This document shows positions 23,767 through 58,295 of a stretch of DNA of 64,000 bases, piece after piece. Position 1 is the stretch's first letter, and every line of letters starts with the position of its first letter. A program made the position numbers and the translations under genes. The notes under the pieces were generated by a model, which was not told where the DNA came from, did not search any database, and worked only from the letters and a program-made list of their open reading frames with translations. Source of the stretch: Tubulanus polymorphus (lineage: Eukaryota; Animalia; Nemertea); the NCBI RefSeq assembly GCF_964204645.1, contig NC_134034.1, forward strand, positions 4,047,814 through 4,111,813, in the 5' to 3' direction.

Positions 23767-24136
23767 ATATTGCTGGATTCGTCATTTTTAACCTAAAGAA
23801 TCGGAGACTATAGAATCTTAAAATTAAAGACAGTTTTAGGTCAAGACACTCCCGATTCTTACACTAACTTAAAAAAAAAATTGTAAATATCGCTGACATA
23901 CTGACTAGAGCCTGTGAGGATGGCCATATTATGATTTCTTTTTAGTACCTTGGATATTCGAGATCTAATGCAACAGTATATAGCTTCACCCCCAAACTTA
24001 AAATACGGGCCAATAATGTTTAGCTGAAACGTTGCTCTTAATATATTCTCTTCTATTCAAGTATTTTTAATCTCGGACTGACTCATTGTTGGATTTCTGT
24101 CGTCACTCATCATTACACGAATAGTGTGTACCTTCT

Positions 24137-24971
24137 CAGGGGCGGATCCAGACCGTATTAGCCGTATTGCCCAATACGGTCTAGAATTTTTAAGTGCCCT
24201 TCGAAATTTCACCGGCAATATTTTTGACGGCATTATTTCAGCAACCGCTAATTCCGTGTCCGTAATCCGGGCATAATTATAGAATCATAAAATCGGTATA
24301 TACTGCTGCCGAGAAAGTGAGGAGAGATAGTCATATTTGTAAAGCCTTTAATCATGATAAATTAAAAAGGGCACTTTCCTTTTGCAAGGGGCACTCATGC
24401 TTTAGATGAGGGCACCTTGCCCTTGCCTTTTCATCAGGGAGGGCTAAAGGGGCACTCGTACTTTAGAAGAGGGCACTATACGCGGAAAATGTTGAGGAGA
24501 AGGGCACTTTTTTGCCTAATTTTTAAAATTTTAGGGGCACTTTTGGTTTGGAAGATGGCACACGACATAAGGATAAATGTGAAGACGAGGCAATTTTTGC
24601 CGATTGTTAACAATGAAGGGGCACTTAGCCGTATTCTGTATAATTGTTAAGGGGCACTTTTAAAGATTTTAGGGGCACTAGGCGAATTTGCGACAACCAT
24701 TCTTTCATGGGTTCGCCAGCTTCATTTTTTATCCGCATCTGTTGAAATCTTGTCTCGAATTCGTTCATTCTGGATTGCTCTGCTAGCCTGAAGCCCTCTA
24801 AAAGCCTTTAAATGGTACCATATTTTCAAAATTTTCTGCGGGTGCGCCCTCTAAGGACTTCGCGCCTTCGGCGCTCGCATTGACCTGGATACTGGGTGTG
24901 CCCTAAGATCAGAAAGGTGCCCTTAAATTTCCTTCCAATACTGTCTACCCATCCCCCTGGATCCGCCCCTG
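24137..24971 (+). mobile_element. Non-autonomous TIR element, CAGGGGCGGATCCAG termini, 5-bp TSD
   Basis: Perfect 15-bp TIR, TSD CTTCT, many internal GGGCAC repeats. Near-identical copy at 51926-52772. Confidence 0.9.
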
Positions 24972-24979
24972 CTTCTCGA

Positions 24980-35200: not shown

Positions 35201-38200
35201 CTATCACCAGACATTACCGGGTAATCATTTTATCAGTACATAAGCCTAATCAAAAAGATCCCAGTGTTTACGCTTTATCAACAAGTGATCATCCACGCCT
35301 CACAACTGTATAATTAGTATAAATGTATGAAGGAGTCTACAGTGTAGTCTCTATGCTAATAAGATAAAAACCCACTACAGATTAAAAGAATTTAAAAACA
35401 AGAATTTATTTATTCAATCTGAAATATATAGAATACACGACGTTTCGACCTCACACCTGACGATGATCTCTAGGGTGAGATCGAAACGTCGTGTATTCTA
35501 TATATTTTAGATTGGATAAATAAATTCTTGTTTTTAAATTCTTTTAATCTGTAGATAGTGGGTTTTCATCTTATTATGCGTTCACCACGTTTAAGTGTGG
35601 TTATCTAGTCTCTATGCTCTCTGTGGCTCTGACTGTTGGCCGTGTGTGGAGGTTACTGTACATGATAAAGGAGAATTAATTGAAATGCTGAATTTGATAC
35701 TGATCGATGTGATTTTTTTCTTTCTAACAGAGAACGTCAGCCCGGTGATGGAGAGGCAAACGTCGAATTTGAAGATGACGATGACGACGAAGCTATTGAT
35801 AATCTGGAAGATGATGTCATCATCGACGGCTCGGATGATGGTAGGTTGTGCGTAGACGTTGAAAAAGAATGATTCTAGTTTTGGGACGATGACCAAGATA
35901 AACCGTAATTGAAAACTTTAGGGGTCATTCATTTTTTACGTATGCATTAGGGGAGGGGGAGGGGTCAGTGCAATTGCGTACTGTAATGCTTAATGTATAT
36001 GAAAAAATGGCCGATTATGCGTACAAAGTGGAGGGGGGTTGAAAAATTTAAATTTTATGCGTGTAAACGTAATAAATGAATGCCCCCTTATCGGGAGTCA
36101 CGAGTTTAAATTCTAGAGTCAAAGTTGAAGGTAGTTCATAGATTTGGCTCAAGAGCTGGGTCTAACTTCGAGGTTAAAACTGAGTTCAAGGTACAGTTTA
36201 GACGCTACTGTTAATACTTGATTTTTTCAAGAATCTAAACTTTAAACCGTTTCACGCTTTAAAAGTCTCGACACCAACTTTGTGGCCAACAATGGCTGCT
36301 GCGAGACAAACTTAGATACGGAACCCAGGCTATATCTTAAAGAGGTGCACGTTTGTGGTCAGGAAATCTTTCAGGACCCAGTTCCACAGTTCTGAGTTAA
36401 GATTTGACTCAGAGTTAAATCATTGGAAATGAACTAATTTTAACCCAGAGTTAACTCTAGCTCACAACTGTGGCACTGGGTCCAGAGCTCATTGCATAAT
36501 ACCATCACTAATGAAATACTGCTGCATAAACCAGTATCCGTCCTAGAATAATTTCGCAAGTGTTCTGTTCCATCTCCAAGTGAGAGAAAAAAAATCCAAA
36601 GACGGCTGTTTTCTAAATTTGATCGGTATGTTTATATTTGAAGCGTGCGCTTGTCTTAAGGCCTGCATCTGGGCGGAACTTCGTCAATGAGTAGGGGAGG
36701 GGTGTTTGTTGGAACCCCCGAACCGCGTCTAAATCCTGGCCTGAACTTAAAAATGGTTTGCGGTACTGGGCCATGCATTCGCAATTTAGGCCCGTGTTGT
36801 ATGGTGAGAAGGGGAATGAGACTTCTTGCGTTGGAAGTGCGGCAGCGAAAGCTTTGAATGCCATGTTTTTGACAAAATTGAAATAAAATTCTCCGCTCCG
36901 CAACGTAATGGAACCCGTCAAACATCAGCAATAGGCTGCGACGATCAAGTATCAAGCTTCCAACCCCTCTAAACTAAAACGCGTCGATTCAACTGGATTA
37001 GCTGTGCTCGTTATTATATCCATATGAAATATTCAATTCCGACTCCGAAATTTTCCATTGTTTCTCGCAATAGGGCCTGGTATTGATAGTATCGTGTTAG
37101 ACCGGCGAATTCACTTACGAAGACAATCGCGCAGTGCAGCGATTCCGTCTCTCGTATTGTTTTAGTGTTCGTGCTTTGTGATTATGTGTGCACGCTTTTC
37201 ATCCCTTGTATAAATACTGCGTGCGAGTTGTGAATGTTTGATAACGCTACCACTCTCCACAGTGTGGTGGTCATTAAACAGCGCTCATAAAGCAAATGCA
37301 AATACTTCGAATAAACATTTTCTATTGAATTTTCGAAGGCCTTCGACATTTACAAAACTTGTTCTCAGCCTATTGCTGCGATCTGGCCCGGGCCAAATTT
37401 GACTCTGGCCTCGTCGGTATTTCATTCTTAGTTATAGCACCTCAAATATGGAACTCTCTACCATCATCAATCCGTTCATAGACATCAGGTCTGTCATTCA
37501 GATGCAAACTTAAAACTCATTTGTTCAAAGCAGCATATGAAGTTTTATCATCAACGGCGCCTTTGAACAGGGGAAAGGGTGCTAAATAAATTGAATTATT
37601 ATTATAATTATTATCCGTACCAAATAAGAGAGCGCATTTGATACGCAAACCACTCACTCGATACTAGACAATGCTCATTATTCCGGAAGCAGATGCGATT
37701 CAAACGCAATCATTCATCCTATGCTAAGATCTGGTCCGATGTTTTTTGGTCGGGCCCAAAACGCCTAGGCCTATGTGATCGCTGCTTTTGGTGATGTGGT
37801 TTGCGGACAACTCAATTCTTGTTCAAAGTATGTAAAAATTGCTGCTATACCTTTTGAATGCAGTGCAAGGAGATGCCGAACATATTCTACTCAACAGTAT
37901 AACATGATAATATAGGCCTAATGAGCATAACAGTTATTGTACATTTTGAATTAGAAAATACAGCAAATCAACTAAGTTCAACTAAATGTTTAGAACAGCT
38001 TTAATATAGCAAAAGATAGAAAGAGTTCTGCGCACAGTTCAAAATATAGGCCTACGTATTACAGCTTAGATTTTACAAATGTTGCAGACGTTATAAATTC
38101 ATTATTTCTAGAAAATTTATTGTATCGCGCAATGAGAAGTTCATTGATGAGTTCATTGCATAATTAAGATGTTTGAATATCAAAAATATCGCAAATTAAA

Positions 38201-39176: not shown

Positions 39177-42100
39177 CAGAAAATATATCTGTATTACAGA
39201 AGAGACGGACGTCTGCTCGTCGAGTTCGCCGTCCCGAACGTCGTCGGCCCGCGTTCGCTCGGCGACGCGGCGATTCGCCAATCTCACGCTGAAAGAGAAC
39301 ACGATCGCACGAGAGCGCCCGCTTACCCCGGCGCGCCGATCGGCCAGTTCGTTGTCTCGTTCGACGCCGACGACTCGCGCCGAAATACAGCCGGCTCTGT
39401 CAAAGAGTCTCTTCGTTAACGTGCCGCCGACGATTAATTTCGTGTCTGAAGGCGAACAAGGTACGTATCTACTTAACCCTTTCAGTGCATCTACACCGCA
39501 GTGCGGTGTATAAATCGGTAATGGATCTTGCTAGTACACCGCGCTGCGGTGTATTGATTTAATTAGTAATTATGTCTGTAGAAAGATGGCAGCACCTGTC
39601 AAACATAGTGAAATATTAGTAACTAATGATACACCGCACCGCGGTGTAGATGCATTGTATTGGTATTCCCGTTATTCAACACACTAGGGTTGAATTTTCC
39701 CAAATTTTCACATTTTCTCAAGTACTATAGGGTATTAATTAGTCAGCACGGAAAGGGTTAAACCTTTCCGTTTAACAGTTATTGACGACGAAACTCTACC
39801 TGATTTTTTAGTCCGCTATATTTCTCGAACTCACGGTTCAAACCTGTCTCACCGACCGTTTGAGCTCCCAGGTTACCTCCGATACCTTTGATACCGAAGA
39901 GATACCTGGGAGTTGCCGATGATACCTCCGATACCGTAGCAGGCGCGGATCCAGGATTTTTCCAGGAGGGGGTTCATATAATAATGTTAAACCGCCGACT
40001 AAAATCTCTGATAGGGGGCCTACACAGCATATTGTTTGGCCAAACATAAGATGATATTGTGCCGATTATCTGGTACTGTTCGTGCGCTTTGTCTTGAGAA
40101 CATTCCTTCAAGGTAACCATTAAAAAATTTTTTTTATAGCTGAGGAGGCGGGGGTCATGACCCCAGAAACCCCCAACCCCCTCTGGATCCGCACCTGCAT
40201 AGATACAAGAGAGACCTGTCTCACCGACCTGTGAGCTCCCAGGTTACCTATGATACTGAATAGGTTTCCTGGGATTCTAAATCTTTGATACCAGGGATAC
40301 CTGCACTCCTGATGTCGAAAATTTGTGAATCTATTTTTTTGCGGCGCCGAGTTGCGGAGATGCCATCTTGAAACTGTGTTGAACTAGACCGGCTGATAAC
40401 GCAAAACTCTTACTCGATATTTGACACTTAGTGGACAATTTGACCATTATCACTCTTACTGCAGCAACAGACAGAGTCTATTGTATTTCTCAAACTCTAA
40501 CTCGGTATTTTCGACCCAAACTTAGTGGACAATTTTACCATTCTCAACTTTACCGCTGTACGGGACAGAGTCTGCTGTATTTCTCAATCCCAAACTCGGC
40601 ATTTTATCGCAACTTGATGGAGGATTTCACCAGCTGCCAATGAACTGAGTAGACAACAGGATCTAATGTTTTTCGAAGAATTTTTTTCTTGTGATATGCC
40701 ACTAGAAAAAGAATTTGATAATTTTTCTCAATTTCAGTCGAACAGTTGCCGTGGGAGATTCGAAAGATGTTCAAATGGCGTTTGAGTCCGATTACGCCAA
40801 ACATCGTCAAGAATTTGCTCCTGAGATCGCACTTCAGATACTCGAAGAGTAAGTTCATTCAAATCATCGTTCAATGTGTAGAAATATCCAGTTGCTGTTT
40901 TAGAATTTGAATTTGGCTCTTAGGTGGTAGAATAACCACACTCAAAGCTGGAGAACAGAGTAAAGATGAAAACCCACTAGCCTATATGCTGAATTGAAAG
41001 TTTCAAAAATCGAGAATTAGTTCAATCAAAGACTGATAAAAAAACATGACATTTTGAACTCACATTATAGGCCTAGATAAAGATCATCATCTGGTGTGAC
41101 CAGTGTGATTGAATAAATTCATGATTTCTAAAACTTTTGAATCTGTATACCGATAGAGTGGGTATTTTATCTTACTGATTCTTAGGTAAAAACATCGGAA
41201 ACGAGCTAATTTCAATTTGCCAGAAAACTGGATTCAGGTCGTGATTTCTTGGTCGGTGTCTAAACATTACTGAGTCCGTCACTTCCTTTTACAGAAAGTT
41301 ACGATTGGTTAGGATGTTGGGGTAAACACATGAAAGCTCAAGGATTTCGCTCAATCAGGGAATATCAAAAGGTTAGTTTCGCGTTTGTGATGGGGATCGG
41401 GTTTAAGTAAAAAGCCATCTTTTCAATCAGATTGTCAAAGGCATCCGTTGTCATTACTAAGTGTGTTTGAAAAACATCACTTTGACAGTATTTGCATAGA
41501 TGTGAATATTCTTAAGACTGAGTAAGGTTGAAATCAGTTGTGTTTAACCCATTAGCACTCAAGTCGCCCGTATCCGCCCTGCCTATTACTCCTCAAGCCG
41601 CCCGAATCCGCCCCGGCACTTTTTTCGTATGCTGCACGAAAACGGTTATAGTAGGATTCAAACCCAATAGCTTATGATAAACTACACACCTAAGTCCTCG
41701 AAATACCAACCAGAAATCAACATCCTCCTATTTCAATTTCTCGAGTATTTCGAGTTTGAACATGACACATCTGAGCGCTCACTACAAATCCAAGTAAGTT
41801 TGGATGAATTTCGGGGGCCTAAAAGGACGCGATTTTGGTTGACCATCTCATCAAATCATACATCATATGAAAGCCTTGACTATTTACTACAAAATAAAAC
41901 TAACTTGTAATGCATAGAAATAAAACAGCAAATGAGCTAGGCCTATTTGGTATCGTGATGAACTTAGATTTTACTTTGAATTTTCTGAGGAGTAATTGAC
42001 ACTACATAGTGCAATTCCTGAGTGCTAATGGGTTAAACTAGACATTTACGCAGTATAATCAGTTCAACTGTTTACAAAATGAATCACAACATGGAGCCAC

Positions 42101-45100
42101 GTTTTAGCTTTTACGCGTATATCCAACAGGCGGGACTTGGAAACGTGAAACGTGACAATCACATGGTTCACTAGTTTTAGACATAGTTTGCCTAACTTCG
42201 GTTTTCCAAGGCTAAGTTTAGACTCAATTATTACGAATACACAACATACGCTATAATCATTATCCGAATGTACTCCTTCTATTGGTCGACTGGTTAGCGC
42301 GCTTGGTTTCTATGTATTAGAGACCCCCTTAATTGTCCTTTTTGGTGTACAGTTTTTCAGCGAAAGCAAATAATATGTAACCAGAGATAAAAAGTAAAAA
42401 GTACAACATTTTGTGATAATTATTTACAAGAAGTCCGTAAATGACCCTTGACGAGGGATTATGACTAGATTAAGCCAACTTTGGCTTCTCCTAATTCCTC
42501 GCATAATTTATTGGTACATTGTTTTCCATATATTGTGTATTCATTTGTAAACTCTGTAACAATCTTTTATGCAAATAAATCATATCATATCAGTATCGAA
42601 TCGCGATTACCAAAGTTCGACGTGGATGTTGGAAATCTCTCCTGTCTTGTACAAATGTACATCGCCTCCATTGATTACGGATTGCTGAAGTGTGAACAGT
42701 TTTTTCAGTGAACACTTGTCTTTTTACGTCTTTTCGTTTATTTTCGTAGCTTAATCATTTTCCCGGCTCATTTCAAATCGGGCGCAAAGACCGACTGTGG
42801 CGCAATCTATCGAAGATGCAGGTGCACTTCGGTAAACGCGAATTCGGATTCTTTCCAACGACGTACTGTCTACCGTACGATATGAAACTATTGAAACGCG
42901 CGTGGGAGGACGGCGGCAGTAAACAGAAATGGATTATCAAACCGGTGAGTTGGATTTGTTTTACGCGTATTGCTGTCGAGATGCCTGTAACAATGAACGC
43001 TATTGTGGCAATAGACGATTTTACTTGTGATGAGTGAGTATTCACCAGGTGTCACTAGTGTGCAGTAGGACATCGACTATTTTTGAAGTGATATAGAGGA
43101 TTTCACATGTAGCAAGTGAGGAGTAGAGGATTCCACTTGTTATGATTCACAAGGTGTCCTATGCATGCGATAGGGCATCAGTTACTGTAGAGGATTCCAC
43201 TTGTGGCTTGTGAGGGTCCACCAGGTGTGCTACAGTACAGTAGGACATCAACTACTGTGGTCGCGATATAGGATTCCGCTTGCAGCTAGACGATTACGCT
43301 TAGTCGATGAAAACTACACTGAACTTGTTGAAATCAATTTAGATTCGTGAAGCAATGATCTTAGCACATAAAGACCCACAAGTATGAAAACTCAGTAAAT
43401 CTGGCGTTCAGAGGTTTATTCAAAAAAGATCTATTTTCAAATGAATCTCAGAATCTAACTGAAACAAAAATCTTCTCTGTTAGTTAAGAAAAAATTTTGC
43501 TTATTGACCTTTAATATTGTGGGTGTTTTGTACACCCTTGTCGTCAATGATAATTGAATCATTTTAAAGTTCAGTTGTTTTTAATTGAAAAGACGACGAA
43601 ATTTATAGCATGGAACACACTGACTGACTACTAACTACACTGGTTGTTCAGCACTAGTCACAAGTTGAATTTTCCATTGCCACAGTTTGTTAGTTTGTTT
43701 AATGGGTTTAATTAGTGAATATGTTGATGTTTTTACTTATTGTAGCCTGCGTCTGCTCGTGGTATTGGCATCAAAGTCATTCATAAATGGAACCAAATAC
43801 CAAAACGACGTCCCGTAATTGTACAAAAGTATGTATATTACACTTGAAAATGGTACTCCCCTATGTCACTCGTAGCATTCCGGGGGTAATTTCACCTCAA
43901 AAGCGGTGGGGGAGGGATGTAGGTTTATGTTGAAAATTTACCTCACAAAGCGATGGAAACAAACAAAACTTTAAACGCACATCAGAGCATCGGACTTAAC
44001 TTAGCTTGGGTCGCGTTCGTACTTAAGTCAACTAAACTGTAGAGCCCCACTGCAACCGAATAATTTTGGACCGAGGAAAGAAATTGATGATCGAATTCAT
44101 GAGCTGGATTGAATATCATATTTCACATCTTTGTCTAGATCGATTTGAACTGATCCATATAAAGAGGTTTAACCGCATAATGGAACGAACAAATTTGCGG
44201 ACAATAAGTCCAAACCGGAATTCTGGAATTCAAATTCAGCTATTTCAAGCAGTAGAATGAGTCAAATTAAACCGCAATTGTGGAACTGGATCCAGTGTCT
44301 TAATATGAACTAATTTATGAAAATCTGGGCCCATTTCTTCAGTTGTCGTTTGACTCTGAACTCGTGCATGTGAAATTAGTAAATTTCTTATGTAATGTTA
44401 ACCGCACCGTGTTGTTGGTATTTTTGTAGGTATTTATCGCGCCCGTTTTTGATCAACGATCACAAGTTCGATTTACGGATTTACGTTTACGTGACGAACT
44501 ACGATCCGCTGAGAATTTACGTGTTCGAAGACGGACTCGTCAGATTCGCTTCTCAGAAGTAAGTATTTCATTCGAAAGAAATCAAGCTGCATCTTCGCGC
44601 CACCAGCAAGTACGCGGTTATGGTTACCAAATTGATTTCAACGATCTGCTCAAGTCCCGGTGCGCCAGCTTAAGCCCAACGCACATGTTTTTTGTTATGC
44701 CGTGTGCGGGGGAGGCAAAACACAAAACGCCGAACTGAAAACAAGCAATGCTTGATTTACGAAAAACGTTTTATGTAGTCGAAAACGTTTTTCGTCCCGT
44801 GTGCGTTGAACGTTTTATCGTTTGCGGGCAATTGTGAATTTTGTGAAAAACGTGTTTTCTGTTTCGGCAAAACAAATGTTTTGCCGTGTGCGTTGGGCTT
44901 TATTGTCTTGCCTCGTCAACCATGTGTCCAACATTTTTTTCTGAACCGAGCGTCTCCACGTGAAAAGGTTCGATTTTAGCAGGGGTGGATCGAGGGGCAG
45001 GCTTTGAAAGGAGCACAAGGAAATGAAAAGGAATACATGCTGAGAAAGTCCACAACCACCAAAATGGGTCTGGGAATTTTTTTTCGAAATGTCAGTGCAT

Positions 45101-48100
45101 TTTCATGCAATTTCTAGGTACTTAAGGGATATTAACACGTTTGCTGCCACCTAGAGGTTTAATGTCCGGTCGCCATTGCCAACGGGAATTTTTGACATTA
45201 TCCAATTTATATGCTGCCAGCACTATTTGTACATTGATATATAAATACACTGATCTATTTTAGTGTAAAAAACCAATGACGCGATAACTCGTCACTGGCA
45301 CTGGTGAATAGATTCTCAATTTTTCTTGTCCCCATTGTCAGTGAAAAGTGTGAAAAATCAAATAAAAATCTAAAAGAATATAGGTTTTATTGTTTTATTG
45401 TTAAAATGATATAGAATGATTTTAGTAGTTATATTCTCTCTAAATATTGGCCGGAAAAGAAGCTAAAATTCATTGCTTTCTGAAGATTTTTTTTGAGTAA
45501 ATTTCAATTGTGCACCAGACTTGAGTTACCCCGATAAACAATATCTTAGTCTCTCCATACTGCCAGACAATTGTTATCTGGTTTCTCGCCTCTGCCAGGT
45601 CATTCATAACGCTATAAAATGACATTGAATCGATGACGATATAACTCGTCATGGCAAACTGAGGTGCACCCACCATGACGATTTATATCGGCAGCGAACG
45701 TGTTAAGGTAGGGACACACGAGCGTATTCTTTTGCCCGATCGCGACGATTAAATTCCCCGACGAATTTGTACGCCCGATACGAGCGGGCACACGTAGCGA
45801 TTCAACCAAAATTCGGTCAGCGACTGGCACTTAGTGGGAGAGAGTTAACGAATCACATGATATCAACAATGCATCCTATTGGTTGATAGAAATGGATTCG
45901 CTGAGTGCGGGCAGACGAGCGAATTTGCGGGCGATCCGATCGCCGGCGTAAATAATCGGCCCAAAATATTAAACATGTTCGATACGGGCGATTCGAGTTT
46001 GCTTGAAATTCTGTTGCGTTGAGATTGTCCGAGAATATCGCAATCATGGCATTTAAACCCATTTATTCCTCTGTTGTGGATTTTGTATTTAGAATATCCA
46101 TCATTGTGTCAAATATAGATTGTTATATTATGCATACTGCTTAGGGCCTATATTTACATCATATGCCCAGCGGGCTGGGTGTAGAAATTTTTCTATTCGA
46201 AATAATTGCTAATCAATATTGTCACGACACGAGTCACATTATTGAAGAATGTAGAATTGTATATCATAGAATTCTATCTATCTATCTATACTGAGGAGCA
46301 TTGGAAGCAATTCTTAATTGCTGTGGCCAAATGCCGATTTTGGACAGGTTCTACATATTGCTGCGGCGAATTTACTTAACTTTTTTCAAAAAGATGGTAT
46401 TCAAAGAAAAAAACGTCATTCAGTAGACTATTGACGCGGCTATCGCCGCTGCAGTCGCACTTCCAACGCCACTGATACTATCATTGATATTGTACTATGA
46501 AAATATGATCTATTCGTTCATCATGGAAACATTATGTTTCTGGTTAACTCATTAGCACACAGGAATTTCTCTAGGTATGTAGTGTCAATTACTCCTTAGA
46601 AAAGTTCATCAAGAAACCAAATAGCTCATTTTGATGTTTATTTCCATGCATTACAAGTTTGTGTTATTTTGTTCTAAATAGTCGAGGCTTTCATATGATA
46701 TAAGATTTGATGAGGTGGGCCACCAAAATCGTGTCCTTTTTGTCCCTCAAAATTCATCCAAAGATTCTTGGATTAGAAGTGAGTGCTCAGATCTGTCATA
46801 GTCCAAATACTGGAGAATAGGAGGATGTTGATTTCTGTACAGTATTCTGAGGACTTGGGTGTCTCGTTTATCATTAACTGTTGGGTTCAAATCCCACTAT
46901 AACCGTTTTCATGCAGCATAGGAAAAATGTGAGGCAGATTCGGGCAGCTTGAGTAGTAGTAGGCAGGGCGGATACGGGCGCCTTGAGTGCAAATATGGGT
47001 TAAAGTTATCGTTTTTCATTCAAATTTCAGATATTCGAGTTCGATGAAAAGTTTGAACAACAAATTCATGCATTTGACGAACTACAGCATCAACAAACGC
47101 AACAACGAATACCAGTCGAACACAGATGAGAACGCGTGTCAAGGTCACAAGTGGGGACTAAAAGCGCTGTGGGGTTATCTGAAAAAACAGGGCCACAATG
47201 TGCAAACGATCTGGAACAATATGAACGATCTGATAATCAAAACAATTCTCTGGTAAGAGAAAATGTTTTATGATATTGATGAAATTAGCCATTTTGTTAC
47301 CGACTCTCAATCATTGCAACTTCGCAACAGTGGATTACTAAGGGCAAACCCTTCAGTCAGTTTCTATCTTCAGTTTGAAACTCTAATCCTAACACTTTCG
47401 GACCAAGTTCAACAGTTGTGTGAATTGAATTTGGTTCTGGATTCATTTCCGCATTTGTGTCAGTTTGATTGTACCTCCTGCAACAAAGTGGTCACTGGAG
47501 TCGGATAAAGTGATACGAACGCTTAATCAAAATTTGAAATTTTCCCCTTGAAAACTCCATAAAACGAGTCCTTCAATTTTTGAATGATTGATCTGTAGGG
47601 AACCTGTAAATAAACGTGATAATTCATTTAATTTCAGCGCAGAACCCGCGATAAACAGCGTTATCAAGTCGAATGTACGCAGGCGTTATAGTTGTCACGA
47701 ACTGTTCGGGTTCGACATCATGTTGGACGAAACGCTGAAACCTTGGATCATCGAAGTTAACATTTCACCGAGGTGAGTCTCCTGTCGACTTGACCCTTTA
47801 CGCAAAATTGCAGCGTTTCTGTAAACTCGTTCTTAAGTCGTTGAAGTCCCGACAGACAATCATGGCGAACTACGATTATCGGAGTTAGTTGACTATAGTC
47901 GAACTAAATAAACCAAATGTCAGTCAGTCGGACCTATAGTCCGGAAATGGTCGACCACGCGATTGAGCGCGGTCGCTGTCGTTCAGACCTAGGTTCAAGA
48001 TTGCCGACACTGCGAAATGCGTTCGACCGAATTATAGTGCGTTCGGTTTTTAGTTCCGACGGCTGGTCAACTAGCGAAGAAAACCCAAGTTCGCCCATTG

Positions 48101-51100
48101 AGTCGATGACTTATCAAATTGATGACTTACACTAAACGAAATTGATTAGAATTAATCCGGGACAGATACTGTACACCATTTAGGTTTTAAACGATCGTTC
48201 AAGGTTTTAGGCTCGTCTTGATGTCCGTCCTAATTGGGTTTGACGTAAATATGTTCATGTCAACCCCGATCGCCTTTGTAAAACAGCAGCCCTTGCTGTC
48301 GTTTCATTTAACCGATTGATGTCGCTAGGGTCTGTCTTCATTCAAAACAAGCGTGGCGGAACCTGGCTGTAGGGCAGAATTTTTACGAGTGAAAATCGTG
48401 AATTTTGTGCAATCGATTGAAAGCCTGGGAAAACGAAATCAGGAAACAATAGCAGCCTTTAAGGGGTTAATGTGGCACAATGCTTGATATGGTAGATTCT
48501 TTTCAAGTCAGATCCGATAAACTTGGATTAGCGTTTAACTTGTATGTAATAACAATAACAAATATGTCAGATATCATTCAAGTCGGAGAAGATTTTACTT
48601 TCCCAAAAAGGTCCAACTTGTGCGTTGCCTCCTGTACCTGTATTTTGGTAATCAGTATTTCATCGATGTTGAAATATTTGATAATTGTCTTACTATCTAT
48701 AAATACTTTTTGTCAGGACCATCTCGTTAACCACTACTTTGCTGGAATACATCATCCTGGTTGAATGAAAGATTTACGTATATCTTTATTATGATCATTA
48801 ACATTATTAGTATCTTTATGAATAAGAAATACGAAATAAATTTGGACTCAAAATTGAGATCAGTGAAATGTGATGGCTAATGATGACGATCATTTTGAAC
48901 ATCGAGCCTCTTAGCCCCTCCCCCAATTCTATATACAGTGCCCCTTCAACAAAAATGGATACGCCTCGTTTTTTTAATCACATTCTACCGTTCTCTATTG
49001 AACTAGATCGCGACGGGTAAATATGAACTAAAGCGTTACTAATTTACGTTTCGGCTAAAATTCATTCATGCATGAACTCAAATGTTTTCATTTTGCGATT
49101 TTTCTTCCTCTGCCTTTTCAATAGTTTATCGAGAAAACGTTTTTTATTTTTTGTAAACCCCGAGGGTGACGAGAACCTTATTCAGGTTCACCCGACACTT
49201 ATGTCACCGGCTTTAACGTGCATATCTATTTCCCGCATGTCCATGACCGTAAAATATGCATGACGACCGATATTGATTATTTAGACCTTATTGATTAAAA
49301 GAATTGATAACAATTAGTTTTAGATATGCTGCACCACATACGTATGCATTGATTTTAATCACAGTTTTTTCTGGAAGAAATTGTGAAATTTTTGCTTTTC
49401 ACTTGTATCTAATCGTTGCATGTTGCACACAAGAAAACGTCAAAAAATTTGTGCTACGTTTCAAGGTTTCTGTATATAATTAACTTACTCAGCCTTGAGT
49501 TATGGGATTGAAACACGGCTGTTTATATTAGCGCCTATGCATATTTCGTAGCAACAATCGGTTGTTGAAAAGTTCTAACTTATGACATGCTCTATGATTA
49601 TGGTGAGTTTTAAGGTAACCAGCTTCTGTATTTGTTCACCAGGGGAACATTGAATATTGATTTTGTCCAATTGTCAAGCATTTCACTTAGTGTGGGCATG
49701 GATTCCCTTTTATATCGAATTCGTCTTTACTTTAGTTTGCACTCAAATTCACAATTGGACATCAATATCAAAGGTCAGATGATCAAGGATTTGTTCAACA
49801 TAGCCGGTTTCCAGATCCCCTTGAAAAGCGACGTCGTTCCTCAACCATCGGAGAAAGGCGATACGAGGTAATCTTGAAACTTTTAGTTCTATATAATTTA
49901 TTAATTGAAAATGTGGCCTTCAATCTCAGTAAGACTGGTCTCATATAAACATTGAGCAGCGAGTCATTGATCATTGAACCTAAGAGTCATTGAGCCTCTC
50001 TGGACTGGTTGACCCTTTCAGCGCAGTGTATAAATCAGTGATGGACTAAGGATACACCAAACGGTGGTATTTTTAACAATTTTGAAATTATCTTGACACT
50101 TTCACGTATTAATTAATCAGCCCTGAAAGAGATTAAATGCTAGTCTGAATAACTGTGCATCGTTTATATTTTTGGCTTTCTAGTAAGAATTCGATTCCCG
50201 CTGAACTGTGTACGGATAAACGTTTGTGGTCGACGAATCTATCGCCGGATGAAAGGGCGAAACACGCTTATTACTGTCAGCGTCATAACGACGAGGTTTG
50301 TTTGAAAATTGATCTTAGTAAGAGAGTCTAGATAATTCAAAATCCATAGAAGCAAAACGGTACAAATCTCATTTTCTAATGAGTAATATATATTTATTAT
50401 AGCAAACGTTTTCGGGAGTTACATTATCCCCTCTTCAGGCATAGCGCAAATGATTGAATTTAGATATCATACTGGTATTCATATAGAATGAGACGAAGCT
50501 AATTACAAACAATTTCAAATTAATGAGTGACAAGATAATTATAATACAAAGATAGTTTATTATTTACTATCTAAAATACTGAGTGAAGATATTTGACTAG
50601 TAGTTAATTATCTAAAGACATTGAGAATGAATCCTGACCCGTGTTCGAATAGTTGTTGATTAAGGGAGGGCTGTTGAGTTTTGATAAAAAGTGCTTCTCT
50701 AATTTTGCAATCTAAATCAGAAGATCCTGTATCTAAAATTTTGAAATTCTTTTCGCTAAACGAGACCTGGCAGTCATGGCAATTTGACAGATGTTGGCCA
50801 ATTGCTGAGGTCTTAAGTTTGTGCTCCTTAACTCTTGTTACTAGGTGTCTTTTTGTTTTACCTATGAAGGCAGTGTTTATATCACTTAAACAAGTGTACT
50901 TGTAGACAACCATAGCTTTCAAGGATTTAGGAGTCGGACATTTAAGTGAAAAGAAATTCTTAATCTTAGTGGTTACGAACGAGCATTGAAGGTCTATTTG
51001 TTTGAAAATAATATTGCATTTCTGGGTTGAGATTTGACTCGCAGGTTAAAACGTCAGAACGGATCTTAACTCGCTAGCCGGGTAGACCCTGCCCAGGTGT

Positions 51101-54100
51101 ACAGTTCCACATCAAATATTTACTATCGACAGGGTGGTCACTGACCTGGAAAACTCAACGGAAAAAATCAGAAAAATTGAGGACAGAATCAAATTATCTT
51201 GAAACTTGGTCTACTGGGTTCGCAGTACTTGGCAAAAATACCCCAATCTCACTCCAAGTAATGCTGCGAATGGGCTGTTTGGGATCATTCTTTTATTAGG
51301 TACGCTTTAGGGGAGGGGGAGGGGTAACTGCAACTGCGTGCTGTAATGTGTATGAAAAAAATGGCCGATTTTCCGTACAGGGTGGGGAGGGGGTTGAAAA
51401 TTCAAATTTTATGAGTATGTAATAAATGAATGATCCCTTTCTGAAAAAGATTTCTTTCTTCGCAGCAAGTACAGTTGACATTGCTCGATACGTTGACACC
51501 GGACGACATTCGAATGTTGATCGAACTACTGGACGAAGACAGTCGCAAGGGTGGATTCCAGCGAGTATTCCCGTGTATTCATTCTCACAAATACCTGCGA
51601 TTCTTCGAGCAGCCGCGTTATTACAATCTACTCTGCGATTCTTGGGTTCGCAAGTATTACCGCACCGAGGCCAGAGGTACGTACGTTTTCAAAACATCTC
51701 CAATGTATGATGTGTATACCGGTATCATCTTCCCCCGGCAGGGATTCGAACCTGATGGCATCGTCAAAACATCTCCAATGTATGATGTGTATACCGGTAT
51801 CATCTTCCCCCGGCAGGGATTCGAACCTGATGGCATCGTCGCACTAGACCGAGTGCACAGCTACACGCGCAGCTTAGATGATGTCATTATTAGCCAATCA
51901 GATATCGCTTTCTTTTCGCCCTGGTCAGGGGCGGATCCAGACCGTATTAGCCGTATTGCCCAATACGGTCTAGAAATTTTAAGTGCCCTTCGAAATTTCA
52001 CCGGCAATATTTTTGACGGCATTATTTCAGCAACCGCTAATTCCGTGTCCGTAATCTGGGCATAATTATAAAATCATAAAATCGGTATATACTGCTGCGG
52101 AGAAAGTGAGGAGAGATAATCATATTTGTAAAACCTTTAATCATGATAAATTAAAAAGGGCACTTTCCTTTTGCAAGGGGCACTCATGCTTTAGATGAGG
52201 GCACCTTGTCCTTGCCTTTTCAGGCAGGGCTAAAGGGGCACTCGTACTTTAGAAGAGGGCACTATACGCGGAAAATGTTGAAGAAAAGGGCACTTTTTTG
52301 CCTAATTTTTAAAATTTTAGGGGCACTTTTGGTTTGGAAGATGGCACATGACATAAGGATAAATTTGAAGACGAGGCAATTTTTGCCGATTGTTAACAAT
52401 GAAGGGGCACTTAGCCGTATTCTGTATAATTGCTAAGGGGCACTTTTAAAGATTATAGGGGCACTACGTGAAGTTGGCGACAACCATTCTTTCATGGGTT
52501 CGCCAGCTTCATTTTTTATCCGCATCTGTTGAAATCTTGTCTCGAATTCGTTTATTCTGGATTGCTCTGCTAGCCTCTAGAAGCCCTCTAAAAGCCTTTA
52601 AATGGTACCATATTTTCAAAATTTTCTGGGGGTGGGCCCCGAGACCCCCCTCTAAGGACTTCGCGCCTTCGGCGCTCGCATTGACCTGGATACTGGGTGC
52701 GCCCTAAGATCAGAAAGGTGCCCTTAAATTTCCTTCCAATACTGTCTACCCATCCCCCTGGATCCGCCCCTGCCGGTTTTCCCATTTATAGTTCTTCCGG
52801 GAAATTTACCTCAGTGATTATACAACGAGCAATCTGATTGGTGCCGCAAGTTTTTGTGTGGTTGACCTGCGCATGTACCCGCGCACACGGTCTAGTGTGG
52901 CAGGGGTTCGTGCCATGGCTGAGTGCAGCGATGCCATCAGGTTTTGAATCCCTGGTAAGGGAGGATGATACTGGTATGTGTATGCACATACAGAATCTGT
53001 GCAAAACGTATTGAATTCAACTTACTCTTCAATGCAGTTTGTCTAAGTTCATGCATCCTCGCTTGCCAGGGGTTCAGTATAGCTCCCCGAACTCGCTACC
53101 ACCAGCTGCCTGACCTCACGCCGCACAATTTCATTACTGGTGCTTTTTCACATGATGCCATAAATCAACTTGCGAAATACATCCTTGTCAAGTAAAATGT
53201 TCGCTGATTGGTCCATTTAACATGAAATCCAGCAGAAGTCTAATATTATTTGTTACAAGCACTGTGATTGGCCCGACCTGATTCTGGTCGGCTAGTAACA
53301 ACTCCAACGACTCGTGAGGTCAAGGCGTTCGGGGAACGGCTTACTTAGTGGGTTCGATCCCTTGATGGTTGAAGATGAAATTCATGATGACCGCCAGCTG
53401 TCCTAAATCTAGTGTCTGGTGTTTCTATTGTGTTTGTATTGGGCTCACGTTGCACTATATTTCTCTTTCCTTCTTTTGTCGATTCATAAGTATTTCTATA
53501 AAAGCGTAGTGTATCAGATCTATATCAATAATGCATGAACATTAAAAAAAAAACTCCTGCAAAATCATTTCTGGTTTTTGCCCGTCTTCTGGCCACCTTG
53601 AAATATGTTGTATGTGTGTAGTAGGGCAGAGTTATCCGTGCGCAAATTTCTTTTTTATATGTAGCTAATAAACTTTGAAACATTGACACTTTGAAACTTA
53701 TTTCATTTTCAATTAAAGATGTCTCAGATGAAGTCTGGAAAATAACACAGAATAGTGATAGATTGTCCGATTGTCTTTCTAGGAGCTGTACGCTTAGATT
53801 CGTATTGTCAAAAATTCATCCACCGCGGAAATCCGACTACCGATCCGAACCACCAGTGGGCGCCACCCACGCTGACACCTCGTACGCAGAGCGCTCCAAT
53901 GACCAAAGCCAAAATGGACAATAGGTAAGAGAGATGAAAAAAAGAGAAAGCCATATGAACATTTGTTAGAGAAATGAGGCAAAAAGGTTACATAACCTAT
54001 GCAGCAGCTAATCTGCTACCCGCATCACAGTCTATGGGTAAGGCCTGGATGATCTGATTTTCCCAGCATGATAGTTTGTGGTGTTAGGCTAATGTGATCT

Positions 54101-54957
54101 TCAGGAGAGATAAAGGATGTCTTAACAGTCGATTTGGCAAGGATGGCATGTTAAATTTGTGAAGGGGGATGGTTGGTAGTACAGTCTGCAGATCGTCACC
54201 CGGATCAAATCAACATGATTTTTTTCGAATAATGTAGAAATCTTGACCCACTTTTAGAACTTGGGCTTTAACCCTTTGGCTTTCGGTGATGACTGAAGCT
54301 TGGAAGATAATTTGAAATAGTTTGATGAAAAAATTTAATGCTTCTATAATGCGTATACACTCCAGCGTATACACTCTGGCGCAGTGGATCGTTAGTTATT
54401 TTTATGTAACTGTGTTTGACAGCTGCTGCCATCTATCATCAAAATGCCATCTATCATAAACTTTTACGAAATAGATCAATTCACTGCAGTGTGGTGTACT
54501 AGCAAAGTCCATCAACGATTTATACACCGCATTGCGGTGTAGATGCTTAAATTGATTCATAAAACCAGGCTGGCTCATTTAGAACCGTTGACATTGGTCC
54601 AGTTCATGCGAAATCCAAGGTACATTAAAACCAGTTTGCTTCGGATGATTTTGGACTGGTTTATCAATCCAGAAATCCATTAAAAACCTTGATTAAATGC
54701 GGTTTACTGTGTTTGTTAGCTGAACTGATGTAGTTCTTAGTCTGAAGTCCCGCGATACTCGGTTGAACTGGGTCCGGAGAAGTTGAGATAGCCGTTTGGA
54801 TTTCACGTTTGAAATTTTTTGTATTTTCAGTTCCTCGACTCCGCGTCAACGCCGACGTCTGGTGAAGACGGGGCGCGCGATACCTCATTCGAATAGCCTA
54901 TCGTCGCTCGGCCTACCATCGCGACCCCCGAACCTACGCGACACGCCGAACAGTTGA
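30453..54957 (+). CDS. TTLL4: Tubulin glutamylase TTLL4, 15 coding exons, 1284 aa to the first stop: join(30453-32260,35731-35840,39200-39460,40738-40848,41295-41371,42750-42944,43746-43828,44430-44558,47031-47252,47638-47772,49736-49867,50184-50295,51466-51676,53783-53924,54831-54957)
   Basis: All introns are GT-AG with matching phases (3855 nt total). TTLL4 blocks [108 protein letters not shown]. Confidence 0.93.
35358..35605 (+). mobile_element. Palindromic Penelope-derived non-autonomous insertion with 13-bp TSD
   Basis: About 97-bp inverted arms (35358-35454 / 35475-35576). TAGTCTCTATGCT repeated at 35345-35357 and 35606-35618. Confidence 0.8.
35453..35494 (+). ncRNA. Minimal type I hammerhead ribozyme, intact
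   Basis: ACAC-CTGACGA-T-GATCTC-tagggt-GAGATC-GAAA-CG-TC-GTGT; predicted cleavage after C35490. Confidence 0.85.
35731..35840 (+). CDS. TTLL4: TTLL4 exon (acidic segment)
   Basis: Strong polypyrimidine-CAG acceptor; [28 protein letters not shown]; phases 2/1 fit the neighbours. Confidence 0.8.
35921..36087. mobile_element. Tourist-like MITE (second copy 51281-51437)
   Basis: TIR GGGG(T/G)CATTCATTT; TTA TSD. Confidence 0.75.
36375..36482. mobile_element. Small Harbinger MITE
   Basis: TIR GACCCAGT(T/G)CCACAGTT; CAG TSD. Confidence 0.75.
37475..37613 (+). mobile_element. L2-group LINE extreme 3' end
   Basis: [15 protein letters not shown], then a GCGCC..GGGTGCTAAATAAA hairpin region and an (ATT)n tail. 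Confidence 0.6.
39005..39177 (+). mobile_element. L2-group LINE extreme 3' end with (ATT)n tail
   Basis: [15 protein letters not shown] followed by a short UTR and (ATT/ATC)n at 39120-39177. Confidence 0.7.
39200..39460 (+). CDS. TTLL4: TTLL4 exon
   Basis: Ends [23 protein letters not shown]; NAGNAG acceptor CAG/AAG; phases 1/1. Confidence 0.85.
39477..39757. mobile_element. piggyBac-type MITE (relatives ~50013-50133 and ~54330-54550)
   Basis: TTAA-CCCTTTC(A/C)GTGC...GCACGGAAAGGG-TTAA. Confidence 0.8.
39940..40197. mobile_element. CAGG.GCGGATCC-type MITE, 5-bp TSD
   Basis: TIR CAGG(C/T)GCGGATCCAG; TSD CGTAG/CATAG. Confidence 0.75.
40738..40848 (+). CDS. TTLL4: TTLL4 exon
   Basis: [29 protein letters not shown]. 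Confidence 0.92.
40926..41179 (-). mobile_element. Older copy of the Penelope-derived hammerhead palindrome family
   Basis: Homologous to 35358-35605 in reverse; TSD TCTTAGGT; hammerhead core decayed (CAGATGA, AAAA). Confidence 0.6.
41295..41371 (+). CDS. TTLL4: TTLL4 exon
   Basis: [23 protein letters not shown]. Confidence 0.92.
41548..42032 (+). mobile_element. piggyBac-type MITE
   Basis: TTAA-CCCATTAGCACTC...GAGTGCTAATGGG-TTAA. Confidence 0.85.
42750..42944 (+). CDS. TTLL4: TTLL4 exon (TTL domain)
   Basis: [20 protein letters not shown]...KWIIKP. Confidence 0.95.
43746..43828 (+). CDS. TTLL4: TTLL4 exon (TTL domain)
   Basis: [28 protein letters not shown]. Confidence 0.95.
44430..44558 (+). 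CDS. TTLL4: TTLL4 exon (TTL domain)
   Basis: [38 protein letters not shown]. Confidence 0.95.
44673..44899. mobile_element. Harbinger MITE
   Basis: TIR AGCCCAACGCACA; TTA TSD. Confidence 0.75.
45136..45702. mobile_element. piggyBac-type MITE (CAC termini)
   Basis: TTAA-CACGTT(T/C)GCTGCC...GGCAGCGAACGTG-TTAA. Confidence 0.75.
46548..46999 (-). mobile_element. piggyBac-type MITE, inverted copy of 41548-42032
   Basis: TTAA flanks; colinear with the reverse complement of 41548-42032. Confidence 0.85.
47031..47252 (+). CDS. TTLL4: TTLL4 exon (TTL domain)
   Basis: [22 protein letters not shown]...[12 protein letters not shown]. Confidence 0.95.
47638..47772 (+). CDS. TTLL4: TTLL4 exon (catalytic ExN)
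   Basis: [27 protein letters not shown]. Confidence 0.95.
49736..49867 (+). CDS. TTLL4: TTLL4 exon
   Basis: [25 protein letters not shown]. Confidence 0.93.
50184..50295 (+). CDS. TTLL4: TTLL4 exon
   Basis: [20 protein letters not shown]; phases 2/0 fit. Confidence 0.85.
50340..51020 (-). mobile_element. Penelope-like retroelement 3' part: GIY-YIG endonuclease plus pseudo-LTR with hammerhead
   Basis: [49 protein letters not shown]. Downstream hammerhead GC-CTGAAGA-G-GGGA..TCCC-GAAA-ACGT-TT-GC at ~50400-50443. Confidence 0.9.
51466..51676 (+). CDS. TTLL4: TTLL4 exon
   Basis: [39 protein letters not shown]. Confidence 0.93.
51691..51840 (+). repeat. Perfect 75-bp tandem duplication at the end of a family A element
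   Basis: 51691-51765 is identical to 51766-51840. Confidence 0.95.
51780..52992. mobile_element. Family A element with a nested CAGGGGCGGATCCAG element (51926-52772, TSD CTGGT/CCGGT)
   Basis: Flanks rejoin to the reverse complement of 12398-12697; the insert is near-identical to 24137-24971. Confidence 0.8.
53053..53378 (+). mobile_element. Family B element, uninterrupted copy
   Basis: CATCCTCGCTTGCCAGGGGTTC...GGGTTCGATCCCTTGATGGTTGAAGATG; homologous to the 13406 and 24980 copies. Confidence 0.75.
53783..53924 (+). CDS. TTLL4: TTLL4 exon
   Basis: [17 protein letters not shown]; TTTCTAG acceptor, AG/GTAAGA donor; phases 1/2. Confidence 0.85.
54831..54957 (+). CDS. TTLL4: TTLL4 last coding exon up to the first stop (TGA 54955-54957)
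   Basis: Strong TTTTTTGTATTTTCAG acceptor; phase 2 gives [41 protein letters not shown]-stop. Confidence 0.8.
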
Positions 54958-55563
54958 CTAGGGGTCCGCTTGCCTCCGCTACGCGAGTTACTAACCGACA
55001 ATACGAACTACGCCGCAGCCTGTCATCAATACAACATCAACGTTCTCAAACACGACCGTCGTCTGCGTTTCCATGCATTTAACGCGGCGTCTGCTACTGC
55101 TGCTGCTACTGCTGCCAACGTCGACGCCACCGAAAACGATTACTGGACGAATGACGATACAAACTCGTGCGTCGTTCCCGCGGCGGCGGCGACTAAGCCG
55201 ACGCCGAAGAAGAAGAAGACGAAAAAGGCGAAGAAAACGGCGAAATCGAATTCGTCTTCGACTCAGTCTCGAGGCGTGTCGCAGTTTCCGAACCCGCCGT
55301 CGGAGGAAATCACCGTCAATTTCAACGACGCCGATTTCCGCGAGCATTTACGCGACGAGTTCATAACTCTGCGGCGCGACGTCGTCGGGCAGATAGATGA
55401 CCCGGCGGTGGCGCGGCGACGACGCGGTGGTGAGCAGACGGACGCCGAAGAAGACGTAGGATTGTGGGAGGAGCTAAATGAGGAGGAGGAGCTAAACAAC
55501 GCCGATCAAAATCAGGTTGTGCTTCTTACTTCGACCGGGGAAGAATATATGTACTTCCCGTAG
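54955..55563 (+). CDS. TTLL4: Putative stop-codon readthrough extension of TTLL4 (202 aa including the recoded UGA)
   Basis: TGA-CTAG context; the same frame stays open to TAG at 55561-55563; exon-like GC/CpG richness ends at that TAG. Confidence 0.65.
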
Positions 55564-56772
55564 GAAGTAGGATTCACCGGGTTGTGCTTCGTTCGTTGCC
55601 CTTGGCTTCAATTGGATTGATTAACTCACATGATTGTTGCCTTCGTTGGTTAATTCTATTAACTACACTCATCGAGCTTGAATATTATCTGTGATATTTG
55701 TTAACTCTAAACGAGCGCCTGACGGTGTCCCAGCTACGTGGACAACCAACGGGCGTAAGGTGCTAGACAGTTAGTTAAAAGAATTAGCTCAAAATTGCTC
55801 AGAGTTGCTTTGAGTTTGCTCTATTTGCGTTAAGACGAAACGGGTTGTAAAGCAGTTTCCAGGATTTTAGGGGTCCGCTCAGAGTTGCTTACGGTGATTT
55901 GTGTTAGCAGAGCTGTTTACAGGATTCCCAACTGCTCACTGTTGGTCATCGCAGTTTGCTCTCGCTAAAGAAGATACCAAGATGTGGAAAATCGCTCAGA
56001 GTTGCTCGGATTTAGTTCTAGTTGCGGTTTCAAAATTTTATGGACGATACTAAGTGCCAAATTTCATCGATTATTATTCGTGCTGCTGATATGACGAAAA
56101 ATGTGAAGGAGAATTTGGCGTTATTTTGCCTGACATTCTTTCCGTCGATTAGAAAGCGATATTTCATCGGCAAATTGTGATTTAAAAAGAATAACAACTG
56201 GATTGTATTTAAAGCGCTTTATGTCGGCAGGTTGAAACTCGACAATCAGAGGTTAAGCGGAAAAATTAGTGAACTTGAAAAACTGATATATTTGTTTATT
56301 TACTATGGAATAAAGGAGTTTTAATTTTCGTTAAAAAAAAGTTTAGCCTAATGTCTTTTTAAGTTATGTATTTTTTTCTTAATAGAGGTAGTAATAAATT
56401 TAGCGATTAATTAATGAATTTAAAACCTTATTTGAATGTTTTCAAAGGTTTACAGGTGGAGGTGTATCCCAAGATAATTTGAGTGTACGAACGTCATTTG
56501 TCAATCTATGGGTAACCTCCAACACTCCTGTGGCAAGCAAGGATTCACCAGGTTCACTAGTAGTTACTCGGTCTCCGCATTCGATTTCTGCTACATTTCA
56601 ATGGTAACCAAGTTTTCTCTTAACTAGATCAAATATTCATGAAAACTACATGTATATATATTCTATTTTCTTCCTCATCTTGTTAATATTCTTGTCACTT
56701 ATGGTCATGTAATATTGATTTAAAAGACAATAAACATTAATTGAATTGAATTGTATACCGATATCTGATTAG

Positions 56773-57320
56773 AACTAGGGGTCCAAGAATATTCAACGCC
56801 CCCTGGTGACCATATACAAAACCAATGACCTTGAAACTCACCACAATCATAGAACATGTCATGAACTACAACTTTGTAATTGATCATGGTAGCAAAACAT
56901 GCCTAGGTACCAATCTTATGAGGAAATACTAAGTTATTCTACTATTCAATGCCCCGTGGAGATCATATAGCATAACTTAATGTTCTTGAAACTCACCACA
57001 ATCATAGACGATGTGCTACAACATTGCAATTGATTGTGGTAACAAAATATGCATTGGTACAATTAATATAGAAATACTAAGATATTGTATTATACAACAC
57101 CACCTGTAGTTATAAGCTACAACTTTCTCATTCATTGTGGAACCGGTAACAAAATATGCTTATGTCGAAAAACTTTTTCCCACCTACAAATGAGTACTGA
57201 TGACACCAAGATGGCCTCCAATTGCGTCATAATTGGCTGATCAAAAATACCGGTCTCCGGTATAAAACATCCCTTTCCAAAGAATACCCATCAGCAATTG
57301 CAATGAGAAATGGCAAACGA
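56773..57320 (-). mobile_element. Truncated HINE/DINE-1-like element with 154-bp repeats
   Basis: ACTAGGGGTCC terminus, ~2.5 monomers, then homology to 59480-59640. Confidence 0.75.
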
Positions 57321-57928
57321 TGATGACATTACAGGGAAAGCCTTTCAGAAGGACATCACCAGGAGAAAGCCCTTAAGACGGGCTTTCCCAGTGATTTCCT
57401 TATCCAGATCAGGCCTATTGATTGTTCAGCCATTTTCTGTGGAAAATACAGTACTTAAAGTAAATTACATCAACGGTAAAGCATTTAAAACTTAATAAAA
57501 TGGACTCACAATCTACCGCAGAGGTTCTAATCTGGAGGTTCTAGAGGTTCTAATTTGCAGAATTGGAACGGTATTTTTACCCGTGTGATTGCTTGGTCTT
57601 AATTGGACCGGACCAAATTTAAACCGGTCTAAATTCCGTCGTGTGAATGGGGAAAACCCATGACCATGCATATCATCAACGTTGAACATGCTTACGTACT
57701 TCACAGAGTTTCATGATTTCATCTTTATCAGCCGTTTAAATAAACATTATGGTAAATCCGAGAACAAATAGATCTTCGTGCTCATAACTAAGATCAGTTG
57801 ATCCTAAGACCCATTTATTTTCTTCAGTCCTTCCAAGATGTAGTGTGGAAAATACTAGAATAGAATACCGGGTACGTATTATAAAAAATCTTTGTATTCC
57901 ATTCTCCCCGTTCCCGAATAAAGAATCG

Positions 57929-58295
57929 TTTTAGCCCACTGGGGACTTACGTCCCAGCAGGCTGTCTACGTTCACTGCTCGTCCGTCCGTCCATCCATTC
58001 TTCTGTAGACGGATTCCAGTCTTGTTGGAAAGTTTTGAAGAAGTTTTAATGGATTGTCTTGATACCAAGGCCATATATGTATCTATCTTCCCCAGACATA
58101 TTTTCAGCCCAAACACTACCTTGGCCAGAATCAAGATGGCTGACTGGCGGTCAGTTTTGTTCGCCAAAGCACTTTTTACACAAGTGAAAAGCGAAAAGCG
58201 AAATTCCACCAATTCGCCAGGTGTTACTAGTGTACATGAACGCTGGATTTCTTCTCAAACTCAATTAACCCTACAAGCACATTTCTAGTGGGCAA
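57929..58295 (+). mobile_element. Related HINE copy in the opposite orientation, lacking the tandem array
   Basis: TTTTAGCCCACTGGGGACTTACGTCCCAGCAGGCT hairpin plus (GTCC)n microsatellite. Confidence 0.7.

Follow-up and report, generated by a model that had tools for sequence, protein, structure and literature searches.

A TTLL4-like gene and the reading frame of its last exon

We analysed a stretch of 64,000 nucleotides from the nemertean Tubulanus polymorphus (contig NC_134034.1, positions 4,047,814 to 4,111,813 of the forward strand), referred to as the window, with emphasis on the 3′ end of a gene of the TTL family. Coordinates are positions within the window, and features lie on the forward strand unless stated otherwise. 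The gene, a putative TTLL4-like polyglutamylase, occupies positions 30453-54957 and comprises 15 exons encoding 1284 amino acids over ~25 kb. It closes with a TGA stop codon at 54955-54957, which is followed immediately by CTAG (54958-54961; full context UGA-CUAGGG). In the same frame, an extension of 201 codons with coding-like composition (54958-55560) leads to a second stop codon, TAG, at 55561-55563. We discuss this arrangement as a candidate case of stop codon readthrough in an enzyme of the tubulin code.

Open frames, splice sites and blocks rich in CpG guided the rebuilding of the 15-exon model, which was curated by hand. The first five exons are located at 30453-32260, 35731-35840, 39200-39460, 40738-40848 and 41295-41371, exons 6 to 10 at 42750-42944, 43746-43828, 44430-44558, 47031-47252 and 47638-47772, and exons 11 to 15 at 49736-49867, 50184-50295, 51466-51676, 53783-53924 and 54831-54957. 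All 14 introns are of the GT-AG type, measure 316-3470 nucleotides and carry good pyrimidine tracts. From the ATG at 30453 to the TGA at 54955-54957, the coding sequence amounts to 3855 nucleotides, corresponding to 1284 amino acids, and is free of internal stop codons. The best path of a crude dynamic-programming gene finder likewise closed with the exons 53783-53924 and 54831-54957.

The family assignment was derived from profile and structure matches. The Pfam profile PF03133 (TTL ATP-grasp domain) matched four exons with E values between 1e-11 and 1e-19, which cover the profile positions 11-74, 103-147, 144-217 and 220-259. The best solved chains for the exon 47032-47250 were those of TTLL6 (8.5e-10), TTLL7 (2.4e-9) and TTLL11 (6e-5). 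Judged by these solved structures, the TTL core is closest to the glutamylases and not to TTL or the glycylases. The core is preceded by a disordered first exon of 603 amino acids, for which a search against 5.8 billion proteins gave one weak match of no use, full-length orthologues being beyond the length range of the search. Taken together, the sequence features fit a polyglutamylase-type TTL that is probably TTLL4-like in its architecture. In TTLL4, too, a glutamylase-type TTL ATP-grasp domain follows a long N-terminal exon that is disordered (~600 amino acids), and a basic region succeeds the core; it was by architecture that TTLL4 was chosen here over other glutamylase TTLLs.

The reading frame of exon 15 follows from the chain of GT-AG introns leading to it, which starts from exons anchored by the TTL Pfam profile. 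The chain sets out from one of these, 47638-47772 (...EVNISP, with two spare bases), continues through 49736-49867 and reaches phase 0 at the end of 50184-50295. It then passes through 51466-51676 (...GGFQRVFP..., one base left over) to the penultimate exon, 53783-53924. The latter is bounded by the acceptor tttctag/G and the donor AATAG/GTAAGA (the slash marks the splice site) and leaves the two bases AG. These combine with the T at 54831, the first base behind the acceptor ttgtattttcag/T of the last exon, to form a Ser codon, so that complete codons run from 54832 onwards. The 41 codons preceding the TGA translate to SSTPRQ...RDTPNS, and the sequence around the stop codon reads ...CCG AAC AGT TGA CTA GGG GTC CGC TTG.... 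A search of the Protein Data Bank (PDB) with the exon 51466-51675 remained without a match, and its frame was taken from the phase chain and from a recognisable sequence motif. The two alternative frames of exon 15 were rejected, as they contain stop codons at 54862-54864 and 54894-54896 and do not agree in phase with the upstream donor.

A first-pass annotation of the same DNA, made from the letters and a list of open reading frames, had placed the last exon in this frame, had drawn attention to the UGA-CUAG context with the 201-codon frame ending at the TAG at 55561-55563, and had derived two isoforms of 1284 and ~1486 amino acids. The phasing was reproduced independently through the canonical GT-AG chain from the Pfam-anchored exons. 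Direct reading of the sequence bears out both the stop codon context and the open frame, and the lengths agree (1284 + 1 + 201 = 1486).

Some further observations concern the exons and introns close to the 3′ end of the gene. Retention of the last intron would lead to an immediate stop (AAT AGG TAA, 53922-53928) and to a product ending in ...MDNR. The other open frame of the exon 53783-53924 has a TAG precisely at the exon end. The intron behind the exon 51466-51676 opens with a direct tandem duplication of ~63 nucleotides (aaaacatctccaatgtatgatgtgtataccggtatcatcttcccccggcagggattcgaacctgatggcatcgtc; 51683-51830), across which the frame of the exon stays open beyond the real donor. This duplication includes a tRNA-like GGGATTCGAACC stretch and may represent a SINE-like insertion (SINE, short interspersed nuclear element).

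The open frame between the two stop codons

To assess how unusual an open frame of this length is, we simulated the extension as a first-order Markov sequence with its own composition in 20,000 trials. On average, 6.8 stop codons were expected in 201 codons, and the frame remained open in 0.11% of the trials (P = 0.0011). The other five frames of 54831-55563 contain 7-11 stop codons each, and the extension frame holds only its two named ones.

Codon usage was evaluated with a log-odds table for which exon 1 and four additional stretches of exon sequence served as training data. The extension scored +0.22 bits per codon in its own frame; the two alternative forward frames scored -0.34 and -0.55, and the reverse strand gave values from -0.12 to -0.37. 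For reference, non-coding windows scored -0.30 on average (standard deviation 0.25) and windows from exon 1 had a mean of +0.38. The signal of the extension peaks in 55100-55330. The use of the codon positions resembles that in exon 1, with G frequencies of 0.38 at position 1 and 0.12 at position 2 and a G+C-rich position 3.

The base composition changes at the second stop codon. It is at 55563, and not at 54957, that the GC content declines from 0.56 to 0.40. The ratio of observed to expected CpG is 1.82 in exon 1, 1.77 in the last exon up to the first stop codon and 1.71 in the extension; introns show values of 0.7-1.06, and the ratio behind the second stop codon falls to 1.17 and then to 0.54. 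The first-pass annotation had claimed that the extension shares the GC- and CpG-rich style of the true exons and that AT-rich sequence follows shortly after the second stop codon; this is borne out.

The extension has no Met ahead of residue 198, and translation must therefore arrive from upstream. A separate downstream gene or independent open reading frame was ruled out on the same grounds. The first AATAAA downstream is located at 56309-56314, and none occurs between the two stop codons. Openness, codon usage, position bias, composition and the lack of a start of its own lead us to conclude from the sequence that the extension is coding, or was so until very recently, and is reached from the upstream TTLL exons. 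Extension and last exon are single-copy in the 268-Mb assembly of 77 contigs, where no second copy, haplotig or paralogue was found. A search of this assembly for a mitochondrial COX1 was also negative.

CTAG is rare behind TGA in this DNA. On both strands of the whole window, CTAG follows TGA in 9 of 2798 cases (0.32%).

The CpG-rich codon style of the exons is a peculiarity of this gene and makes the exons visible by eye. The excess (observed/expected 1.7-1.8, with many NCG and CGN codons) is found in 30453-32260, 39200-39460 and 54831-55563; introns and flanks range between 0.5 and 1.1.

The peptide encoded by the extension was modelled with AlphaFold2 from the single sequence. The mean predicted local distance difference test score (pLDDT) was 46, and most of the peptide is predicted to be disordered. 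The sole stretch of moderate confidence is a predicted helix at 55327-55401 (residues ~124-148, pLDDT 68-73). A Lys-rich patch, KPTPKKKKTKKAKKTAK, lies at 55195-55245 (residues 80-96 of the extension) and might resemble a nuclear localisation signal or a microtubule-binding stretch of cationic character. Towards the end, an acidic tail (EEDVGLWEELNEEEELNN ... GEEY) spans 55447-55548, with the acidic stretch proper at residues 164-181. An Ala/Thr run occupies residues 45-53, GEEYMYFP stands at the end, and the net charge is -7. From these features, a nuclear localisation signal, additional microtubule binding and autoregulation by an acidic, tubulin-like tail appear as candidate functions.

Searches with the extension yielded no usable match in the ESM Atlas and nothing meaningful in Pfam or NCBIfam. 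At the RNA level, no selenocysteine insertion sequence (SECIS) was matched in 54000-58000 at E values up to 10, or in the whole window at gathering scores. The Rfam search of 54000-58000 at E values up to 10 returned only one chance-level microRNA match on the other strand, and no family was found in the whole window at gathering thresholds. This holds for hammerhead ribozymes as well, although a minimal or split one might score too low to be detected.

Explanations for the interrupted frame

A readthrough isoform is the leading hypothesis for these data, though not a demonstrated one, and we assign it a probability of about one half, with a young nonsense codon in a leaky context included. 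The UGA in the last exon of the TTLL4-like mRNA lies in the leaky context UGA-CUAG. According to this model, most ribosomes would terminate at the UGA and release the enzyme of 1284 amino acids. In a minority, the codon would be read by a near-cognate tRNA (for Trp, Cys or Arg, to judge from other systems), and these ribosomes would continue for 201 codons to the UAG, resulting in a protein of ~1486 amino acids. The additional tail would be mostly disordered and would contain the Lys-rich patch, one helix and an acidic end. In an intermediate version, the UGA would have arisen fairly recently by a nonsense change and would have survived owing to its leaky context. A stop codon in the last exon should not trigger nonsense-mediated decay. 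Readthrough as such, its frequency, the selective maintenance of the tail and the function of the tail are what we infer from this arrangement; that the tail alters localisation or the binding of microtubules or substrates is a guess.

Several observations weigh against readthrough. The bases just upstream of the stop codon (AGU) are not of the A-rich kind reported to favour it, and the UGA-CUAG extensions of vertebrates are short, so that 201 codons would be unusual. The first ~50 codons after the stop codon carry a weak coding signal (-0.15 to +0.09 per codon). We found no stimulatory RNA fold: the 121 nucleotides from the stop codon onwards fold worse than shuffled sequences (z = +2.2). The extension peptide had 0 matches among 1.84 billion representative proteins and 0 relatives among metagenome contigs. 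Finally, insects and crustaceans are the only groups in which readthrough appears to be abundant (PMC5100048).

The context itself has been characterised in human cells. Readthrough in HEK-293T cells was ~1.5% with UGA-CUA alone; natural genes with UGA-CUAG reached 3.5-31%, with MDH1 at ~3.5% and OPRL1 at ~31% (PMC4132726). CUAG is the core common to the validated human cases (bioRxiv 10.64898/2026.07.14.738498). We weighed the explanations by rough per-genome expected counts of each scenario with all observed features. Readthrough came out ahead of a recently interrupted frame and of alternative splicing, mainly because of the 0.3% context. This lead depends on an uncertain prior for long extensions outside insects.

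The most probable alternative, which we regard as unlikely but viable, is that the ancestral frame encoded ~1486 amino acids up to 55560 and was cut short when a sense codon recently became TGA through the change of one base. A change from CGA to TGA at a CpG would be the most probable route, and TGG to TGA would be another. CGA is common, with 17 codons in the coding sequence and 3 in the extension, and the exons are very CpG-rich. The TGA would then be carried by the sequenced individual as one allele or have become fixed recently; a base error of the assembly is the least likely option. A very young truncation would leave an extension that is exon-like in every respect, as observed. The loss of a tail that is predicted to be disordered was perhaps tolerated, and a stop codon in the last exon evades nonsense-mediated decay. 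Nor is the available time span tiny. In our decay model, 2.9-3.8% of the substitutions in the extension create a stop codon. For a neutrally evolving frame, the probability of remaining open falls to 0.5 at 0.03-0.04 substitutions per site and to 0.05 at 0.13-0.17. However, the CTAG context becomes a coincidence of ~0.3% under this explanation, unless leaky contexts allow such alleles to persist, in which case it merges with the readthrough explanation. Moreover, the assembly contains one copy or haplotype and gives no direct sign of a sense allele.

Alternative splicing might also produce a long isoform, if an in-frame intron within the last exon removed the TGA; we consider this improbable. 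Pairs of GT and AG that keep the frame do exist, and the coding signal is weak just past the stop codon. The in-frame pairs of any quality all involve the donor CTG/GTGAAG at 54862, which could be joined to an acceptor at 54988 (intron of 126 nucleotides) or at 55267 (405 nucleotides). On our own consensus matrices, the donor at 54862 scored 1.7 and the acceptor at 55267 (CAG/T) scored 0.9, both within the range of the weakest real sites of the gene. By a third route, the exon 53783-53924 would be skipped and the AG of CTAG used as the acceptor, giving an exon start at 54962 whose phase fits only the donor at 51676. The acceptors at 54988 (GAG/, -3.8) and 54962 (-2.6) are poor, however, and the regular donor at 53924 has no partner in phase among the acceptors behind the stop codon. 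Chance would already supply one passable in-frame pair, given the 5 GT donors and 31 AG acceptors present. Furthermore, the real introns measure at least 316 nucleotides and have a GC content of ~0.37 and observed/expected CpG of at most 1.06, whereas the putative introns show 0.55-0.62 and ~1.7, respectively. The CTAG context would again be a coincidence.

It is more improbable still that no second isoform exists and that the extension is a GC-rich 3′ untranslated region held open by chance. GC-rich DNA is poor in stop codons, and trinucleotide runs (GCT/ACT, AAG, GAG) hold frames open; the lack of homologues among proteins, metagenome contigs and the ESM Atlas and of a predicted folded domain would also suit non-coding sequence. 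Against this stand a probability of ~0.001 for an open frame at the local composition, the positive codon log-odds and exon-like position use in the extension frame only, and the shift in composition at the second rather than the first stop codon, with the downstream flank and the introns being different.

Other kinds of UGA recoding are scarcely credible: UGA is the selenocysteine codon, and editing of stop codons is known in animals, but selenocysteine insertion would take place without rationale in a disordered linker and without a SECIS in 54000-58000, and adenosine-to-inosine editing of UGA to UGG would act on an A with a 5′ G, the neighbour least favoured by ADAR, in an RNA that folds worse than shuffled sequences (z = +2.2).

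Returning to readthrough, its significance would lie in the enzyme concerned. TTLL enzymes write the tubulin code, and the site and strength of their action depend largely on non-catalytic tails. If the UGA is read through, the recoded second isoform would add a new layer of control that is tuned by termination efficiency and not by splicing. The UGA-CUAG signal would be extended to a lineage probably without a previous description, in support of the idea that its targets are the ribosome and the release factor throughout the animals. A wider interpretation, which we offer tentatively and consider doubtful, is that the UGA-CUAG signal acts outside vertebrates and insects and gives rise to a second form of the tubulin glutamylase, whose tail of 201 residues, with its basic patch, helix and acidic end, would redirect the enzyme, the nucleus or other microtubules being examples of a destination. 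On this wider interpretation, no enzyme of the tubulin code would have been known to be recoded before. If the TGA is a young nonsense allele in a leaky context instead, it would provide a snapshot of how programmed readthrough could arise.

Neighbouring features and known readthrough systems

Apart from the TTLL4-like gene, the window contains several other features. An interspersed repeat of ~1 kb occurs twice, at 24060-25050 and at 51864-53020, the latter copy being inside an intron of the TTLL4-like gene. The copies have near-identical translations at 24060-24284 and 51864-52073 on the reverse strand and at 24366-24647 and 52155-52433 on the forward strand. A frame that enters from the start of the window (1-1059, forward strand) looks like the hinge and seven-transmembrane part of a leucine-rich-repeat-containing G-protein-coupled receptor. 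The two similar intronless frames at 5289-5837 and 8464-8887 on the reverse strand (both starting with IQLRCRLV... and containing FGNSAT... motifs) have the appearance of genes for rhodopsin-type G-protein-coupled receptors. At 10301-11698 on the forward strand, a frame of 466 codons with ordinary composition lies in an otherwise non-coding stretch and may be transposon-derived or an intronless gene. About 8 kb before the start of the TTLL4-like gene, a block rich in GC and CpG (22100-22950; maxima of 0.67 for GC and of 0.16 per base for CpG) has open frames on both strands. It may represent a CpG island or an exon that belongs to another gene.

No paper that mentions both TTLL4 and readthrough was found in the library searched. 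The closest known cases are the vertebrate genes OPRL1, OPRK1, AQP4, MAPK10, MDH1 and LDHB, in which UGA is likewise followed by CUAG. These genes share with the TTLL4-like gene a stop codon in the last exon and, behind it, a stretch that stays open in the same frame. Downstream RNA structure is not needed in the vertebrate genes, and none is present at the TTLL4-like site either. The vertebrate extensions comprise tens of residues and are backed by conservation and reporter assays, whereas the TTLL4-like extension has 201 codons, is predicted from sequence and occurs in an invertebrate. OPRL1 and two alphaviruses have UGA-CUAGGC, and the TTLL4-like site has UGA-CUAGGG (PMC4132726).

In Drosophila and Anopheles, hundreds of genes carry C-terminal extensions of up to hundreds of residues, which are often disordered, and UGA-C is favoured (see PMC5100048). 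With respect to length and predicted disorder, the TTLL4-like tail would thus be similar. Insects and crustaceans are, however, the only groups for which abundant readthrough has been reported (PMC5100048), and the TTLL4-like gene belongs to a different setting.

A large readthrough product is also made by alphaviruses. The nsP3/nsP4 opal codons of Sindbis, Ross River, Getah and Chikungunya virus share the UGA-CUA(G) context and yield such a product at a few per cent (PMC4132726). In these viruses, readthrough extends a viral polyprotein by an essential downstream polymerase, whereas in the TTLL4-like case it would extend a cellular enzyme by a predicted disordered tail.

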